This document shows, in pieces, positions 6,591 to 39,292 of a stretch of DNA of 64,000 nucleotides; the stretch's first letter is position 1; each line of letters opens with the position of its first letter. The notes below the pieces were generated by a model. It did no database searches and was not told where the DNA came from. It saw nothing but the letters and a program-made list of their open reading frames with translations. The stretch spans positions 248,001 through 312,000 of the IMG/VR virus record IMGVR_UViG_3300032288_004964; one strand, given 5' to 3'. The translations under genes were made by a program, and so were the position numbers.

Positions 6591-6623
6591 TTTGGTGATT
6601 AATAAAAATCACCTTATATTTGT
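6591..6623 (+). promoter_or_regulatory. Bacteroidota-type sigma promoter (-33 TTTG, -7 TATATTTG) driving leader 1 and tRNA cluster 1
   Basis: tttggtgattaataaaaatcaccttatatttgta. Confidence 0.75.
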
Positions 6624-6992: not shown

Positions 6993-7078
6993 GCTACGGT
7001 ATGCAAACCGGAATAAGCGACCAGACTTTCAATCTGGACATCGAAAGATGTGTGCGGGTTCGAGCCCCGTCCGTAGTA
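6993..7078 (+). tRNA. tRNA with TTC (Glu) anticodon and long variable arm
   Basis: ccaga-CTTTCAA-tctgg; acatc-gaaa-gatgt V-arm; A73. Confidence 0.8.
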
Positions 7079-7081
7079 CAA

Positions 7082-14500: not shown

Positions 14501-14586
14501 TACTGTGTTGCCGTAGTGGCCGAACGGTCCAGACTGTTAATCTGGTGACGAATAGTCCAACGTAGGTTCGAATCCTACCACAGTAG
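14501..14586 (+). tRNA. tRNA-Asn(GTT) with long variable arm
   Basis: ccaga-CTGTTAA-tctgg; G73. Confidence 0.8.
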
Positions 14587-14591
14587 CAAAA

Positions 14592-15269: not shown

Positions 15270-15349
15270 GCTGATGTGGCACAGTGGCGACTGCACCAAC
15301 CTTGTAAGTTGGAACACAAACATCGGGGGTTCGAGTCCCTCCATCAGCT
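15270..15349 (+). tRNA. tRNA-Thr(TGT) with extended variable region
   Basis: ccaac-CTTGTAA-gttgg. Confidence 0.8.
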
Positions 15350-15356
15350 CAAAAAT

Positions 15357-15449: not shown

Positions 15450-15521
15450 TGCGATATAGCTTAATGGAAGAGCGGCTCCAGACATAGGGAGTTAGTCTTG
15501 GTTCGATTCCAGGTATCGCGA
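15450..15521 (+). tRNA. tRNA-Met-like with 8-nt anticodon loop (AGA-CAT-AG)
   Basis: gctcc-AGACATAG-ggagt; normal D and T arms. Confidence 0.6.
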
Positions 15522-15526
15522 CAAAT

Positions 15527-30395: not shown

Positions 30396-31478
30396 ATGAA
30401 AATAAAAAAGTTTAATCAGTTTAATACATCTGAATGGATTGGTCCTCTTGAAATATTGGATATAAAAGATAATATTGTCTTTACTAACTTTGGTAATTTC
30501 TCTAATAAATCAGGAAATAAACTTACTATTGGTTATTCTTATATTTTAAGAGTTGTTGGTAATGAAATAATTGATACGGGAATGAGTTGTGTGGATTTAG
30601 TTGTTCTAGTTAAATCTACAAAAGGTTATAAAGTTCTTTCTATTAAAAGAGGTAGACCGCCATTTGTAGGTATGTGGGCTAATCCAGGTGGGAATATTGA
30701 TGAAGGTGAGAAACCTTTAGATGCTGCTGTTAGAGAATTAGAAGAAGAAACTGGATTGGTTATACCTGGTAAAAGTTTTAATTATGTTGGATCATTTGAT
30801 AAAGAGTTTAGAGATCCTCGTAATAAAAATTGTGTAAGTCACGCTTTTAGTATTGTTCTTGATGAACAACCTTCTGTTAAAGCAGGTGATGATGCTACAG
30901 AGTGTACTTGGAATGATGTAGATGAAAATGGTAATGTAAAAGTAGATATGGCTTTTGACCATTCTGAAATAATTAAAAAATCTGTAAATATGTTAAATTT
31001 AAAAAATGTTAAAGAACCATTTGTTATTGTCTTGGTTGGACCACCATTATCTGGTAAAACAACTTGGATTAAAAATAATTATCCAACAACTGAGGTGATT
31101 AGTCGTGATGAGATTGTTATGGAAGTTTATGGTTCTAAAAACTATACAGAGGCATTTAAAAATGTTGACCAAAAAGAAGTAGATAAAGTTTTACATGAAA
31201 GACTTGTTGATGCTAACTTGAAAAAGAAAAATGTTATTATTGACATGACTCATATGGCTTCTAAACGCAGAAAACATAATCTAAATTACTTTTCTGATGA
31301 TTATTACAAGATGGCTGTTATTTTCCCTATTCTTTCAGATGATGAATATGAAAGAAGAAATAAAAAAAGAATTGAAGAAGAGAATAAAGATCTTCCAATG
31401 AATATTGTAAAAAGTATGATTTCATCATATCAACCTATCAGTCCAGAGGAAGGCTTTGATAAAGTTATCTCAATTTAA
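30396..31478 (+). CDS. NUDIX hydrolase fused to a P-loop (polynucleotide-kinase-like) domain
   Basis: GGNIDEGE...AAVRELEEETG NUDIX box; GPPLSGKT Walker A followed by ISRD. Confidence 0.8.
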   Translation: MKIKKFNQFNTSEWIGPLEILDIKDNIVFTNFGNFSNKSGNKLTIGYSYILRVVGNEIIDTGMSCVDLVVLVKSTKGYKVLSIKRGRPPFVGMWANPGGNIDEGEKPLDAAVRELEEETGLVIPGKSFNYVGSFDKEFRDPRNKNCVSHAFSIVLDEQPSVKAGDDATECTWNDVDENGNVKVDMAFDHSEIIKKSVNMLNLKNVKEPFVIVLVGPPLSGKTTWIKNNYPTTEVISRDEIVMEVYGSKNYTEAFKNVDQKEVDKVLHERLVDANLKKKNVIIDMTHMASKRRKHNLNYFSDDYYKMAVIFPILSDDEYERRNKKRIEEENKDLPMNIVKSMISSYQPISPEEGFDKVISI

Positions 31479-32559: not shown

Positions 32560-33411
32560 ATGAAAGTAAGAAAATTAGGAGATAAAAAGCCAAAAGTTTT
32601 AATATTTCAAGGTTCACCAAGAGATAAAGATACTTGTCCTAATATGGATTCTAAAACACATGGTGTTGTAGATCATATGGTTGATAAATGGTCTCCATTT
32701 GTTAATTTCAAAGTTATAGATCTTGCTGTTAATCAATCTAAAAGACCTACAATTCAACCTTGTAAAGGATGTGTATCAACTGCTGGTGGATATCACTGTC
32801 ACTTTCAGTGTTCTTGTTACTATAAAGGTGATAAACAAAAGCCAGATTTGTTAAAAGAATTAGATGTTTATAATTTATTACAAGAGTGTGATGCTTTTAT
32901 TATAGTTTCACCGATTCATTGGCATTCACTTTCCTCACAAATAAAATTATTATTTGACCGTTTAGTTTGTGTTAATCAAACATTGACTATTGAAGATGCT
33001 AGAAAGATAATGGGTGATGGTAATATTAAAAATTCTGAAATAACTGGTAAGTTTGCCCGTTCTGGAAAACATGATGATATGTTAAGAAATCATTTAGAAG
33101 GAAAAGTTGCGGCTTTTTATACACATGGTGATGATGGTGCTGATGATTATGAAGGTAAGGAAATGCCTGAATCATATAATGATGTAATGCATGACCCTTT
33201 CTCTATTGACCCAAAAAGTGTTTTAACACCTTTTATATTACAATTAAAATACTCTGGTATTTTTGTTCCTGATAATTTAGTAGAAGCTTTTTATACTAAT
33301 AAGGGAATGAATTATTATGATGCTAATAAAACATTTAATAAGAATAAAGAGTTCTTTGATAGAGCTGATAACTTATTAGAAAATTTATTAGATTATTTAG
33401 ATACTCTTTAA
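32560..33411 (+). CDS. Flavodoxin-like / iron-sulfur flavoprotein (FMN reductase family)
   Basis: GSPR, PCKGC...CHFQCSC, SPIHW...IKLLFDRL. Confidence 0.75.
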   Translation: MKVRKLGDKKPKVLIFQGSPRDKDTCPNMDSKTHGVVDHMVDKWSPFVNFKVIDLAVNQSKRPTIQPCKGCVSTAGGYHCHFQCSCYYKGDKQKPDLLKELDVYNLLQECDAFIIVSPIHWHSLSSQIKLLFDRLVCVNQTLTIEDARKIMGDGNIKNSEITGKFARSGKHDDMLRNHLEGKVAAFYTHGDDGADDYEGKEMPESYNDVMHDPFSIDPKSVLTPFILQLKYSGIFVPDNLVEAFYTNKGMNYYDANKTFNKNKEFFDRADNLLENLLDYLDTL

Positions 33412-33610
33412 AACTTCCTTTAATTTTTTTATAGAAATTTTACAAAAAATTTGGTGAGATTAAAAATCCTCCTTATCTTTGTATAAGAAATCAGAAATGA
33501 TTTTAGTTCATTGAAATAGTTTATTGAAAATATACCAAAACGGTGAGAGATATTAAAAGTAGTACACTAAGTACGAGCTCATATGGGAGGCTGTCACCGT
33601 CCGCAAATTT

Positions 33611-33695
33611 GAGGAAGTTCCAGAGTGGTCAAATGGGGCTGTGTAGTAACACGGCTGACTTTTAGTCTTCAGAGGTTCAAATCCTTTCTTTCTCA
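33611..33695 (+). tRNA. tRNA-Tyr-like with 8-nt anticodon loop
   Basis: gctgt-GTAGTAAC-acggc; long V-arm; A73. Confidence 0.6.
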
Positions 33696-33785
33696 CAAAA
33701 AATATTTTGAAAAACATTTGGTAGAATAAAAAAAAGTTTCTATCTTTGTAAAACAAAATTAAAAGGTATTATATAAAAAACATAT

Positions 33786-33861
33786 TGCGGGAGGGTGAAA
33801 CGGAAAATCATTCCAGGCTCATAACCTGACGAGATACTTGGTTCGACTCCAAGTCCCGCTA
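33786..33861 (+). tRNA. Initiator-type tRNA-Met(CAT)
   Basis: cagg-CTCATAA-cctg; 1:72 mismatch. Confidence 0.75.
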
Positions 33862-33895
33862 CTAAAAAAAGTTTTTATAAATTTTTTACAAAAGA

Positions 33896-33976
33896 TTTGG
33901 ATAATTAAAAAAAAGTTTCTATCTTTGTAAAACAAAATTAAAAACAAAACTATAAAAATAGTTCTTTAACATATTG
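33896..33976 (+). promoter_or_regulatory. Host-type promoter followed by a boxA-like element
   Basis: tttggataatt...tatctttgta, then gttctttaacatattg; the promoter is nearly duplicated at ~33717. Confidence 0.65.
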
Positions 33977-33979
33977 AAA

Positions 33980-34840
33980 TTACAGAAATAATGACTTCGG
34001 TCATTAAAGTAAGTAGGGCGGCTTATAGTCCATAAATAATCTCTGAAAGGAGGATAAAGTGATCACAAATGCTAAATGTGATTGCGGCTTGACCGAAAGG
34101 TTGAGCTCGGGTAAGCGAGTGGAATACCATTATTCCTGAGTAGCCGAGGGTAACACTGTAGGCGAAATGGTTTAGTGATTAGGCGATGTAGATCGTCTGA
34201 TTGACTTCGGAAGAAGAATAGGAATAATCCATAGGAATCTTTGCAAGAAGTGGTGACCCACCAGTTATCATCATTGCGAATTCCAACTTGAGAGGTATCT
34301 CAAAGTCGAAAGACAATTTAGTGTACAGGTGGTGCTGTTACTAAACACTAAACTGACTACCAAGTCGGTGACCTTGCTAAGGTGAGGTCTGGTGAAGATA
34401 TCTTAAAGAGTTGTGATGGAGGCATCACACGGAGTAGTCTAGTATTCTTGAGGCCAAAAGCTTTGGGAACTAAGAGATAACCACTACTTCGACAAAATCT
34501 ACAGCACTAAAATTTACTTTTTGACGTAAAAATTAAAACTTAAATCGAAAGTGTTATCTAGTTACTGATAGAAAGGTACCTACTTAGTTATGGGTTGTCC
34601 ATAGCCACATAAGTCCGAAAGACTGGTGTGATTTTACCGAAAAGCTTATAGGGGGTCGAATCCCGAACTAGCCTGCGAGGGTTGGATAAGTAGAGTAAGT
34701 AGAGAGTATTCAGTGACTCAAGGGGTGGTTAGTCTAACTAACCGGTACTGACAAGATACCATTCAAAAGATGGTGGATAGATTTGGGAATACATAATCCA
34801 AACAAAGACTTGTCATATTAAGATGTAATCTCAGTCTTTT
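33980..34840 (+). ncRNA. Large structured ncRNA, GOLLD-like
   Basis: ~850 nt with no ORF in the track, higher GC than flanks, many GNRA/UUCG-capped hairpins, flanked by tRNAs; family name is from size and context only. Confidence 0.6.
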
Positions 34841-34844
34841 ATTT

Positions 34845-34920
34845 GGTCAGTTCGTCTAGCGGCATTCAGGACGGATATCTATTCAGATATCAAACATTGG
34901 TTCGAATCCAATACTGACTA
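34845..34920 (+). tRNA. tRNA-Glu-like with 8-nt anticodon loop
   Basis: gatat-CTATTCAG-atatc; normal D and T arms. Confidence 0.6.
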
Positions 34921-34999
34921 CTAAGTTTTCGTAGTGGTTAACTTACTCCGAAAGGGGGGTCTGTCAATGACAGTGTGACTACCTCAAAGTCACACATAT

Positions 35000-35099
35000 G
35001 GCCCGTTAGTCTACAGGACTCGCAAGAGAATCAGATTTATCTGATTAGGACGGTCAACTTTTCGGTTGATAGATATTGGTTCGAATCCAATACGGGCTA
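35000..35099 (+). tRNA. tRNA-Glu-like with 8-nt anticodon loop and two hairpins in the D-loop
   Basis: gtcaa-CTTTTCGG-ttgat; nested in a 10-bp stem 34925/35124. Confidence 0.55.
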
Positions 35100-35133
35100 C
35101 AGAAATCACGGTCTTTTGACCGTCTACGAAAAC

Positions 35134-35162
35134 ACCCACTAATTATTTTAGTGGGTTTTTTG
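35134..35162 (+). terminator. Intrinsic terminator ending the ncRNA operon
   Basis: acccactaa...ttagtgggt plus U tract. Confidence 0.75.
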
Positions 35163-35211
35163 TTTTAAATAAACTTTTTGCTTATATTTGTATATTAAAA
35201 ATAATTAAAAT

Positions 35212-35676
35212 ATGAAAGAGTTATTTGAACTAACACAGGAACTAGAAGTTCTAAAATACATTTTTCCAAAAATTATTGTCGCAACAATCTGTGGTTCTAT
35301 CATCGGATGGGAAAGAGAGCGTAAAAATAAAGTCGCTGGTTTAAGAACCAATGTCTTAATCTGTGTAGGATCTGCGATATTTACCATTGTTTCCTTCTTA
35401 TGTTCTAAATACTACAACATATCTGACCCAACAAGAATTCTATCAACTATAGTTACCGGTATTGGTTTCTTAGGTGGTGGGGTTATTATGAAACATGATG
35501 ATAGAATTGTTGGTATGACATCAGCAGCATTTATTTGGACCATTTCAGCAATTGGTATACTTTGTGGTATGGGTTTTATCATATCACCTATTCTCCTAAC
35601 TATTGGTTTACTAACCGTATCACTTTATTTTGAAAAAGTAGAAAAATATATTAAAAAAGATATAAACAAGAAATGA
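35212..35676 (+). CDS. MgtC/SapB family membrane protein
   Basis: IGWERE...AGLRTN, DPTRI, GIGFLGGG motifs. Confidence 0.85.
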   Translation: MKELFELTQELEVLKYIFPKIIVATICGSIIGWERERKNKVAGLRTNVLICVGSAIFTIVSFLCSKYYNISDPTRILSTIVTGIGFLGGGVIMKHDDRIVGMTSAAFIWTISAIGILCGMGFIISPILLTIGLLTVSLYFEKVEKYIKKDINKK

Positions 35677-37156: not shown

Positions 37157-39292
37157 ATGATAAATGAAAAATTAGATGGTAGTGAATACCTAAAAAATCT
37201 TCCTGATGTTAAAGCATCATTAGAAGATGATGAGGACGAAGATAAGTCTTTTAGTTCTAAAAAACCAGACAGTAAGTCTAAGACTCCCGTTTTAGATACT
37301 TATAGCCGTGATTTAACCAAAATGGCTGAAGAAGGAAAACTAGACCCTATTGTTGGTAGAGAAAAAGAAATTGAAAGAGTTTCTCAAATTCTTTCACGTA
37401 GAAAGAAAAACAACCCAATTTTAATTGGTGAACCAGGTGTTGGTAAATCTTCAATTGCTGAAGGATTAGCACTTCGTATTATCCAAAGAAAAGTAAGTAG
37501 AATTCTTTTTAACAAAAGAGTTGTAATGTTAGACTTGGCTTCAATGGTTGCTGGTACTAAATACCGTGGTCAATTTGAAGAAAGAGTTAAGGCTTTAATG
37601 GGAGAACTTGAAAAAGAACCAAATGTAATTCTTTTCATTGATGAGATTCATACTATGATTGGTGCTGGTGGAGCATCAGGATCATTAGATGCCTCTAATA
37701 TGTTCAAACCCGCTTTAGCAAGAGGTGAAATCCAAATCATTGGTGCTACTACTTTGGATGAATACCGTAAACACATTGAGAAAGATGGAGCTTTAGAAAG
37801 AAGATTTCAGAAAGTTATGGTTGAGCCAGCTTCTCCGGAAGAAACTTTACAAATCATTTCTAACATCAAAGACAAGTATGAGTCGCATCACAATGTTACT
37901 TATACTGAAGAAGCTATCAAAGCTTGTGTTGATTTAACTTCTCGTTATATGAATGATAGATTCCTTCCAGATAAAGCTATTGATGCTTTAGATGAGGCTG
38001 GGTCTCGTGTTCATATCTCAAACATTGTAGTTCCTAAAGAAATCACTGATATTGAAAAGAAAATTGTAGATATCAAGGATAAAAAGAATGAAGTAATTCG
38101 TTCTCAAAAGTATGAAGAAGCTGCTAAGTTAAGAGATGTTGAAAGACAATTAAATGAATCTTTAGAATCAGCTAGAAAAGCTTGGGAAGAAGACTCTTCT
38201 AAAAACAGACAAACTGTTACAGAAGATAATGTTGCTGAAGTTGTTTCAATGATGACTGGAATTCCTTTACAAAAAGTAACTCTTAATGAAACTAACAAGT
38301 TAGGTAAAATGCAAGAGTCTATTATTGGTAAGGTAATTGGTCAAGATGATGCTGTTAAAAAGATTGTTAAAGCAATTCAAAGAGGTCGTGTTGGTCTTAA
38401 AGATCCAAACAAACCAATTGGTTCATTTATGTTCTTAGGACCAACTGGTGTAGGTAAAACACAATTAGCTAAGGTATTGGCTAAGTATCTATTTGATTCA
38501 GAAGATTCTTTAATTAGAATTGATATGTCTGAATATATGGAGAAATTCGCAGTATCTCGTTTGATTGGAGCTCCTCCAGGATATGTTGGACATGATGAAG
38601 GTGGTCAATTAACTGAAAAAGTTAGACGCAAACCTTATTCAGTTGTTCTTCTTGATGAGATTGAGAAGGCTCATCCTGAAGTGTTCAACTTATTACTTCA
38701 AGTTTTAGATGATGGTCAATTAACTGATTCATTGGGTAGAAAAGTTAATTTCAAAAACACTATCATTATTATGACTTCTAATACAGGTTCACGTCAATTA
38801 AAAGACTTTGGAACTGGAGTTGGTTTCTCCACTAAGAACAGAGAAAGTAAAGGACAAGAAGAATCAAATGCTGTTATTGATAAGGAATTAAAAAAGAAAT
38901 TCGCACCAGAATTCTTAAACCGTATTGATGATGTGGTTATGTTTAACTCTCTTGTAAAAGAAGATATTAACAAGATTATCTCTATTGAGTTAGAAAAGTT
39001 AGTAGGCCGTGTCCAAGAAATGGAATACAACTTAGATATCACATCAGAAGCTGTTGATTATATTGCATCTGAAGGATTTGACCCAGAGTATGGAGCAAGA
39101 CCTTTGAAGAGAGCAATTCAAAGATTAGTTGAAGATGTTCTAACCGAAGAGATTATTCAAAGTAATCCGGATAAAGGATCTAAACTTTCTTTAAGTTATA
39201 ACAAAGAAGAAGAAAAGATGGTTGTTCAAATTACCCCACCTGAATCTAAAGTTGCTAAGAAAAGAGCACCTAAGAAAAAAGATGATAAGTAA
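37157..39292 (+). CDS. clpC: ClpC-type AAA+ chaperone lacking the N-terminal Clp-repeat domain
   Basis: Two Walker A motifs ([16 protein letters not shown]); UVR middle domain YEEAAKLRD; GVGF ClpP-docking loop. Confidence 0.85.

Follow-up and report, generated by a model that had tools for sequence, protein, structure and literature searches.

Does the long, ornate RNA apparently encoded at positions 33980-34840 of a phage genome segment belong to a known family, or does it define a new one? This is the question raised by a 64-kb stretch (hereafter, the window) of the IMG/VR virus record IMGVR_UViG_3300032288_004964, where an original prediction described a noncoding RNA of the GOLLD class, named the ROOL RNAs as the other family to be searched, and held that a region encoding protein would refute the assignment. 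We scanned the whole window against the Rfam 15 covariance models using Infernal cmscan. GOLLD (RF02032) was matched on the plus strand at 34430-34837 with a score of 270.1 bits (E = 6.8e-76), above the gathering score of 150 bits for this model. The match spans model positions 1-416 of 416, is not truncated, was returned identically in a scan of the whole genome, and is the sole non-tRNA Rfam match in the window. For ROOL, the gathering threshold was reached nowhere in the window, and a search of 33400-35250 at E ≤ 1 was likewise empty. We conclude with high confidence that the 33980-34840 stretch is a complete, bona fide GOLLD RNA gene, a new member of a known family rather than a new class. 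The 385,333-bp record (~95% complete) contains one copy.

RF02032 represents only the 3' half of GOLLD, which is the universally conserved part, and the 5' half was therefore examined separately. Relatives were found with a pattern derived from the GOLLD 3' domain, giving at least 119 viral contigs in IMG/VR. An nhmmer search with the 5' half of the window RNA (33980-34429) returned 92 other GOLLD loci among the matches listed, with E values from 1e-113 to 1e-16, and each match sits immediately upstream of the 3' domain of its own locus. From an alignment of 60 sequences, we obtained a consensus fold for the 5' domain comprising 117 pairs; canonical pairs occupy 95.6% of its cells, and compensatory double changes are seen at 91 of the pairs. 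When the 3' partner was shifted by 1-3 columns, pairing fell to 36-42%, and shuffling the 3' letters brought it to 79.6%. The window RNA can form each of the 19 helices, with canonical pairing at all but five consensus pairs, and at 34305-34314 it has the GAAA-capped hairpin that is invariant in the 5' domain. Judged by sequence comparison, 33980-34429 is the GOLLD 5' domain. Given the RF02032 match on the 3' side and the homology and covariation on the 5' side, the stretch is a two-domain GOLLD of the long environmental type, with a full length of ~858 nucleotides (nt) compared to 814-897 nt in 71 relatives. In the 3' domain, five pairs were flagged as noncanonical in the cmscan alignment, and the RF02032 consensus helices can form. 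A full-length treatment with MAFFT and RNAalifold produced a noisy 3' domain partly at odds with Rfam; the 3' structure used here is that of Rfam, and the 5' structure is that of the separate alignment.

These data bear directly on the alternative that the locus encodes a new class of large structured RNA resembling GOLLD merely in size and context. That the 5' half lies outside every Rfam model speaks for such a class, and nothing else did so after testing. It is refuted by the full-length RF02032 match, at nearly twice the curated cutoff, and by the homology of the 5' half to 5' domains joined to more than 90 other GOLLD 3' domains, and we assign it a vanishingly small probability. The GOLLD assignment proposed originally thus agrees with the size (~860-905 nt), the phage origin, the tRNA linkage, the RF02032 score, and the homology and covariation of the 5' half.

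The physical features first noticed in the sequence were also recovered. The longest open reading frame (ORF) within 33980-34840 is 45 amino acids on either strand, which excludes coding as far as ORFs can show. The G+C content of the stretch is 0.40, compared to 0.275 and 0.304 in its flanks and 0.285 in the entire window, and the four capped hairpins are all present (AATGAC-TTCG-GTCATT, 33990-34005; GACC-GAAA-GGTT, 34091-34102; GTC-GAAA-GAC, 34305-34314; and CCT-GCGA-GGG, 34672-34681). The 880-nt RNA from 33961 to 34840 folds at -263.3 kcal/mol, compared to -214.9 ± 5.9 kcal/mol in 20 dinucleotide shuffles; with a z of -8.2, its structure is far past chance. Short ORFs of 26-45 amino acids, found on both strands, could be taken to mean that a small protein, or several, is encoded here and that the structure is incidental. 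Against this stand the 45-amino-acid maximum, the folding energy, and the pattern of substitution among 60 homologues, which tracks base-pair covariation (the 91 compensatory pairs) and not codon periodicity. The chance that the stretch is a protein-coding region is negligible.

The RNA was also predicted to lie behind tandem host-type promoters. Three copies of a promoter motif do precede it (P1-P3, Table 1) and are real as sequence, but their type is the -33/-7 promoter of Bacteroidota rather than a sigma-70 promoter. Scanning the whole window for TTTG-N17-21-TAnnTTTG yielded 14 occurrences, compared to 4.1 ± 2.05 in shuffles (a >3-fold excess), mostly with a 20-nt spacer (19-20 nt) and often or mostly ahead of tRNA arrays (e.g., at 6591, 7529, 22808, 22901, 33450, 33717, 33896, and 35159). 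The -7 box TAnnTTTG has been described as conserved in Flavobacterium and Bacteroides (PMC7641319). The promoter type points to a Bacteroidota host and to transcription of the phage tRNA genes by the host polymerase. P1, P2, and P3 sit within an 80-nt direct repeat (D1) present in three copies. The third promoter is a feature of the GOLLD family: a TAnnTTTG box occurs within 50 nt upstream of a conserved leader motif in 39 of 59 nonredundant GOLLD loci, often followed by TAAAACAAA.

This leader motif (forms GUUCUUUGAA and GUUCUUUAAC) was found in 56/58 and 68/71 GOLLD loci and lies outside both the RF02032 model and the 33980-34840 interval. It is positioned 10-113 nt ahead of the 5'-domain core, often with a small hairpin before it, and usually 25-35 nt past the TAnnTTTG box. 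Because 33980 is preceded by both the family-conserved motif (33961-33970) and its upstream promoter, the RNA begins earlier than the predicted interval; the stretch itself is real, but its 5' boundary requires extension. Across the 385-kb genome the motif is not enriched (20 occurrences versus ~21 expected), which rules out a signal used throughout the genome, for instance a phage promoter. A pairing partner sought through the G/A variant of the motif across 71 loci gave no clean covarying column.

Between P1 and the next gene, the only credible terminator is at 35134-35156, and all three promoters would consequently feed GOLLD. The terminator-like structure at 33637-33656 corresponds to the anticodon arm of the tRNA-like gene T1. 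In the proposed mechanism, P3 would direct host RNA polymerase to start, probably at ~33934, and polymerases reading through from P1 and P2 would contribute further transcript. The transcript would cover GOLLD, the tRNA-like gene T3, a structured spacer, and a second tRNA-like gene, T4, ending at the terminator (35134-35166).

Formation of the GOLLD 3' end was considered by surveying the downstream context of 89 nonredundant loci. A same-strand tRNA starts 6-23 nt past GOLLD in 24 of them, being tRNA-Met(CAT) in 19 of those 24, and an intrinsic terminator lies within 100 nt in 40; the remaining 25 include several with imperfect terminators or aberrant tRNA-like sequences missed by strict scans. 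The occurrence of either a tRNA or a terminator after the 3' end points to tRNA-processing enzymes in end formation. RNase P cleaves upstream of tRNA-like elements in MALAT1/mascRNA and in polycistronic tRNA precursors. The likeness to MALAT1/mascRNA, where a tRNA-shaped element lies a few bases past the 3' end of a long structured noncoding RNA, is an analogy of mechanism only. In the window, T3 begins 7 nt past the last GOLLD helix. Cotranscription of GOLLD and tRNA was suggested by Weinberg et al. 2017 (PMC5737381), and we infer from the spacing that cotranscription with T3 and release of the GOLLD 3' end by RNase P is the simplest reading. An RNase P cut at the 5' end of T3, the conserved U-rich tract, or both would set the 3' end.

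An intact transcription unit is relevant to another possibility, namely, that this is a decaying GOLLD relic carried in a tRNA region after its function was lost. The adjoining tRNA genes look aberrant, and the leader motif is a minority variant (TTTAAC), as might be expected of a relic. Nearly all consensus pairs are nevertheless intact, with five noncanonical in each of the two domains, as are the promoter and terminator. Single-copy orthologues with the same operon layout occur in at least six large phage genomes, including that of locus L046, and the "aberrant" tRNA-like genes are themselves conserved with covarying stems. We consider decay very improbable.

Table 1. Coordinates of GOLLD, its transcription unit, and neighboring genes in the window
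Feature	Position	Strand	Basis or remark
NUDIX-AAA_33 (kinase-like) fusion gene	30396-31478		Upstream of GOLLD
FMN-reductase-like gene	32560-33411		Upstream of GOLLD
Promoter P1 (TTTG-N20-TATCTTTG)	33450-33481	+	Ahead of T1; motif scan; conserved in LR745206
T1, class-II (long variable arm) tRNA-Tyr-like, 8-nt loop G-U-[A]GUA-A-C	33611-33696	+	ARAGORN; Rfam tRNA partial, 20 bits
Promoter P2 (TTTG-N20-TATCTTTG)	33717-33748	+	Motif scan
T2, aberrant tRNA-Met(CAT)-like, T.T mismatch 1:72, weak D arm	33786-33862	+	ARAGORN; Rfam tRNA 35.7 bits (cutoff 29), lax filters
Promoter P3, GOLLD's own (TTTG-N20-TATCTTTG)	33896-33927	+	Motif scan; family-wide feature
GOLLD 5' leader motif	33961-33970	+	GTTCTTTAAC here, GTTCTTTGAA in most relatives
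5'-terminal UUCG-capped hairpin	33990-34005	+	Position varies; relatives commonly carry one
GOLLD 5' ("cap") domain, 19 helices	34011-34429	+	nhmmer, 60-sequence alignment
GOLLD 3' ("ring") domain	34430-34837	+	RF02032, 270.1 bits
A/U-rich variable linker	34492-34559	+	Single-stranded in Rfam consensus; env-38 counterpart disordered, cage-inward (PMC12286853)
Long-range pairing (Rfam "pseudoknot")	34560-34569 with 34709-34718	+	9/10 pairs can form; in env-38, the intermolecular bridge of L20 with J13/15
Hairpin taken as L21a	34651-34664	+	Loop with self-complementary CG
U-rich tract after last GOLLD helix	34838-34844	+	At this place in nearly all loci
T3, tRNA-Glu-like, 8-nt loop C-U-[A]UUC-A-G	34845-34921	+	ARAGORN; Rfam tRNA 41.6 bits
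Structured spacer between T3 and T4	34922-34999	+	Invariant 20-mer GTTTTCGTAGTGGTTAACTT, then three covarying hairpins
T4, T3 paralogue, ~30-nt D-loop insertion, loop C-U-[U]UUC-G-G	35000-35099	+	Direct repeat D3, alignment, nhmmer
Intrinsic terminator	35134-35156, T-run to ~35166	+	9-bp stem and T-run; closes noncoding unit
MgtC-family membrane protein gene	35212-35676		Downstream; own promoter motif 35159-35190, directly past operon terminator
ClpB-like AAA+ protein gene	37157-39292		Downstream

The best-characterized comparator for assembly is env-38 GOLLD (833 nt, PDB 9MEE; Kretsch et al. 2025), which forms a protein-free D7 14-mer cage in which 5' domains make up the caps, 3' domains make up the rings, and a disordered linker faces inward (PMC12286853). 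Bridges in this cage include an intermolecular pairing of L20 with J13/15 and the symmetric kissing loops L21a and L21b, and GC/CG covariation has been published for the symmetric kissing loop B8 (PMC12286853). The window RNA shares with env-38 a full 3'-domain match, a two-domain organization (~450 + 408 nt here, 420 + 413 nt in env-38), an A/U-rich linker, a 9-10 bp long-range pairing, a GAAA-capped hairpin in the 5' domain, a phage origin, and a nearby tRNA-Met. Its P21 region likewise contains two hairpins with self-complementary loop dinucleotides, the loop taken as L21b holding GC. Among 71 homologues, the dinucleotide of the candidate L21a is GC in most; the window clade and a small number of others carry CG, and AU occurs in a few. 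All three forms are self-complementary. Variation at this candidate loop matches the published GC/CG covariation. The window RNA differs from env-38 in having CG rather than the commoner GC in L21a, in being flanked by noncanonical tRNA-like genes instead of a normal tRNA-Met, and in its setting within a 385-kb phage genome.

Comparison with other RNA cages places the window RNA nearer to the environmental type. The GOLLD of Streptococcus agalactiae (700 nt, PDB 9L0R) is shorter, lacks P9, P11a-c, and P21b, and forms a 12-mer (PMC12990946). It and the GOLLDs of Lactobacillales prophages have the family and the 3' domain in common with the window RNA, which is longer, has the two hairpins of the P21 region, and has a 5' domain of 450 nt. 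The tRNA-array GOLLDs of Mycobacterium/Mycolicibacterium (PMC6582537; Morgado et al. 2020 via PMC12990946) share the mobile tRNA-gene setting and the pseudo- or odd tRNAs but carry a (pseudo-)tRNA within the linker. In the window, ARAGORN detected no tRNA inside the linker (34492-34559), and the tRNA-like genes lie outside, on both sides. ROOL RNAs, which assemble as 8-mer or 6-mer nanocages, are similarly large, ornate, phage- and tRNA-linked, and form RNA-only cages, but their sequence and fold are unrelated to GOLLD. By analogy with the solved GOLLD structures, it is a well-founded inference that the window RNA would form a protein-free, closed, homo-oligomeric nanocage. A 14-mer state would be a guess from its likeness to the env-38 type. 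In such a cage, its 5' domains would build the caps and its 3' domains the rings, with the A/U-rich linker directed inward.

The GOLLD gene is accompanied by four tRNA-like genes within 400 nt. T1, T2, and T3 are the aberrant tRNAs noticed at the outset, and T4 is a further one. ARAGORN reports 29 tRNA genes in the window and 37 in the genome, of which 4/37 are odd; three of these four are in the GOLLD operon, with T4 additionally. The labeling of T4 as an intron-bearing tRNA-Gln is an ARAGORN misreading, as direct repeat D3 and the alignment identify it as a T3 paralogue. In T3 and T4, the anticodon loop is that of a normal Glu tRNA except for an additional base 5' of UUC, and the T arm is standard; their D arm (GTCTAG..GGAC) presumably resembles that of bacterial tRNA-Glu. 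In the LR745206 orthologues, the extra base is U in both the Tyr- and Glu-like genes (T1 orthologue, G-U-[U]GUA-A-C). In the expanded-loop genes, bases 32 and 38 are always able to pair (as C-G or G-C), so that the arm can equally well be described as a 6-nt loop on a 6-bp stem. None of T1, T3, and T4 combines the 7-nt loop on a 5-bp stem with the standard D and T arms of a canonical decoding tRNA.

Conservation argues that these are genuine RNAs. Anticodon stems covary among T3-type copies in six or seven genomes, and this, with the T3 score against the Rfam tRNA model, indicates that the tRNA-like genes are conserved RNAs rather than junk. T3-type genes lie directly 3' of GOLLD in seven genomes (the window, L046, L001, L002, L004, L005, and L060), and the set of Tyr- and Glu-like genes with 8-nt loops was seen in the same seven plus L123. 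The window, L001, L005, L046, and L060 share a conserved spacer between T3 and T4. Within it, GTAGTGGTTA (34931-34940) is complementary over 10 nt to GOLLD 34478-34487, a correspondence to which we give little weight because the chance expectation is ~0.06 by rough arithmetic. For natural phage tRNAs with 8-nt loops, a literature search turned up nothing beyond engineering studies and classic work on suppressors.

T1, T3, and T4 may decode quadruplets, act as decoys for anticodon nucleases, provide processing signals, or be clients of the cage. A specific proposal is that they are functional RNAs with deliberately expanded loops ([A/U]UUC and [A/U]GUA), acting either as natural quadruplet or +1-frameshift decoders or as nondecoding mimics (decoys or clients) that work with the GOLLD cage. 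We regard this proposal as tentative and rather unlikely. If true, it would provide the first concrete molecular partner of GOLLD or a link to recoding.

Other unusual tRNAs were observed in the same genome. An odd tRNA at 15450-15522 of the window, next to a normal tRNA-Met, has the 8-nt loop AGACATAG, an ARAGORN anticodon of "acat," and an Rfam tRNA score of 44.9 bits. Long second copies (81-87 nt) of the normally short Glu, Asn, Thr, and Lys tRNAs stand beside a normal-length copy (window positions 6993-7079, 14501-14587, and 15270-15350; genome positions 245428-245513 and 245518-245599), which suggests insertions like that in the T4 D-loop. Outside the window, a tRNA at genome positions 370132-370204 has the anticodon CTA, which makes it an amber suppressor ("Pyl" in the ARAGORN output); part of this phage genome may use TAG as a sense codon.

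What the unit does can be approached from published work on GOLLD, whose expression goes up during phage lysis, which bound ribosomes in pull-down assays, and for which tRNA encapsulation or "inhibited storage" has been proposed (PMC12286853, PMC12990946). The model to which we commit is a self-assembling RNA nanocage that would be expressed from a strong dedicated promoter and trimmed by tRNA-processing enzymes. While the phage grows lytically, this cage would target the translation apparatus, where it may bind or enclose tRNAs or cargo related to the ribosome; this last step has the least support. As a whole, a full-length GOLLD gene in a 385-kb phage, with its transcription unit and proposed cage and translation role, is very likely the best explanation of the locus. 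Our confidence is high for the identity, moderate for the assembly, and low for the role.

Several points weigh against this explanation. The conserved U-rich tract could form the GOLLD 3' end alone. L21a, L20, and L11a were placed here by their position in the Rfam consensus and not by alignment to env-38, and the oligomeric state varies among known GOLLDs, which form 10-, 12-, and 14-mers (PMC12990946). In addition, the 636-kb genome LR756504 has two T3-like genes and no GOLLD, from which it follows that T3-like genes are independent of GOLLD; their restriction to GOLLD surroundings is thereby ruled out.

The same facts bear on a different view of the operon, in which the unit chiefly delivers tRNA-like RNAs and GOLLD serves as a store, chaperone, regulator, or processing scaffold for the expanded-loop Glu- and Tyr-like genes, with no cargo-independent role. 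The proposals of tRNA encapsulation and storage fit this view, as do the abutment of T3-type genes on the GOLLD 3' end in seven genomes, the concentration of odd tRNAs in the GOLLD operon, and the tRNA found 6-23 nt past GOLLD in 24/89 loci. However, at least 40 of the 89 loci end in a terminator with no tRNA, the close relative L019 has none, LR756504 keeps its T3-like genes without GOLLD, and complementarity between GOLLD and the tRNA-like RNAs would be conjectural. We therefore judge a delivery operon to be unlikely and retain the nanocage acting on translation as the preferred explanation.

The nearest public records to the window genome are the uncultured phage genomes LR745206 (634,780 bp) and LR756502 (642,428 bp). 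Each has one GOLLD with the layout of the window (LR745206.1, 420875-421280; LR756502.1, 434685-435091), and the records are unannotated. GOLLD with this layout is also present in IMG/VR contigs of 483 kb and 313 kb. The largest phage genomes of Al-Shayeb et al. 2020 belong to the "Mahaphage" clade, which has predicted Bacteroidetes hosts; GOLLD is unmentioned there (PMC7162821).

Among the genes surrounding GOLLD in the window (Table 1), the MgtC-family membrane protein is unusual for a phage. To survey neighbors across the family, ORFs within 5 kb of GOLLD were clustered for 90 loci, with counts that ignore phage kinship. In 20/90 loci a same-strand NUDIX gene precedes GOLLD, and in 18/90 a ClpB-like gene lies downstream, on phage contigs that are otherwise diverse. 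Only the window and L046, among the 90 loci listed, have both. Since the counts ignore shared phage ancestry, we treat the recurrence of these neighbors as a lead and not as functional evidence.

GOLLD structures have been solved since 2025, and the window locus contributes little to how the family is defined. Its value lies in presenting a clean natural transcription unit, comprising promoter, leader motif, GOLLD, tRNA-like gene, spacer, tRNA-like gene, and terminator, and in showing that GOLLD occurs in phage genomes that are among the largest known, with predicted Bacteroidota hosts. The comparison of ~90 loci provides three leads: the leader motif, the tRNA-or-terminator 3' end, and the NUDIX and ClpB-like neighbors. 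The expanded-loop tRNA-like genes are the most unusual part of the locus and may be of interest to those working on recoding or on defense systems that target tRNA.

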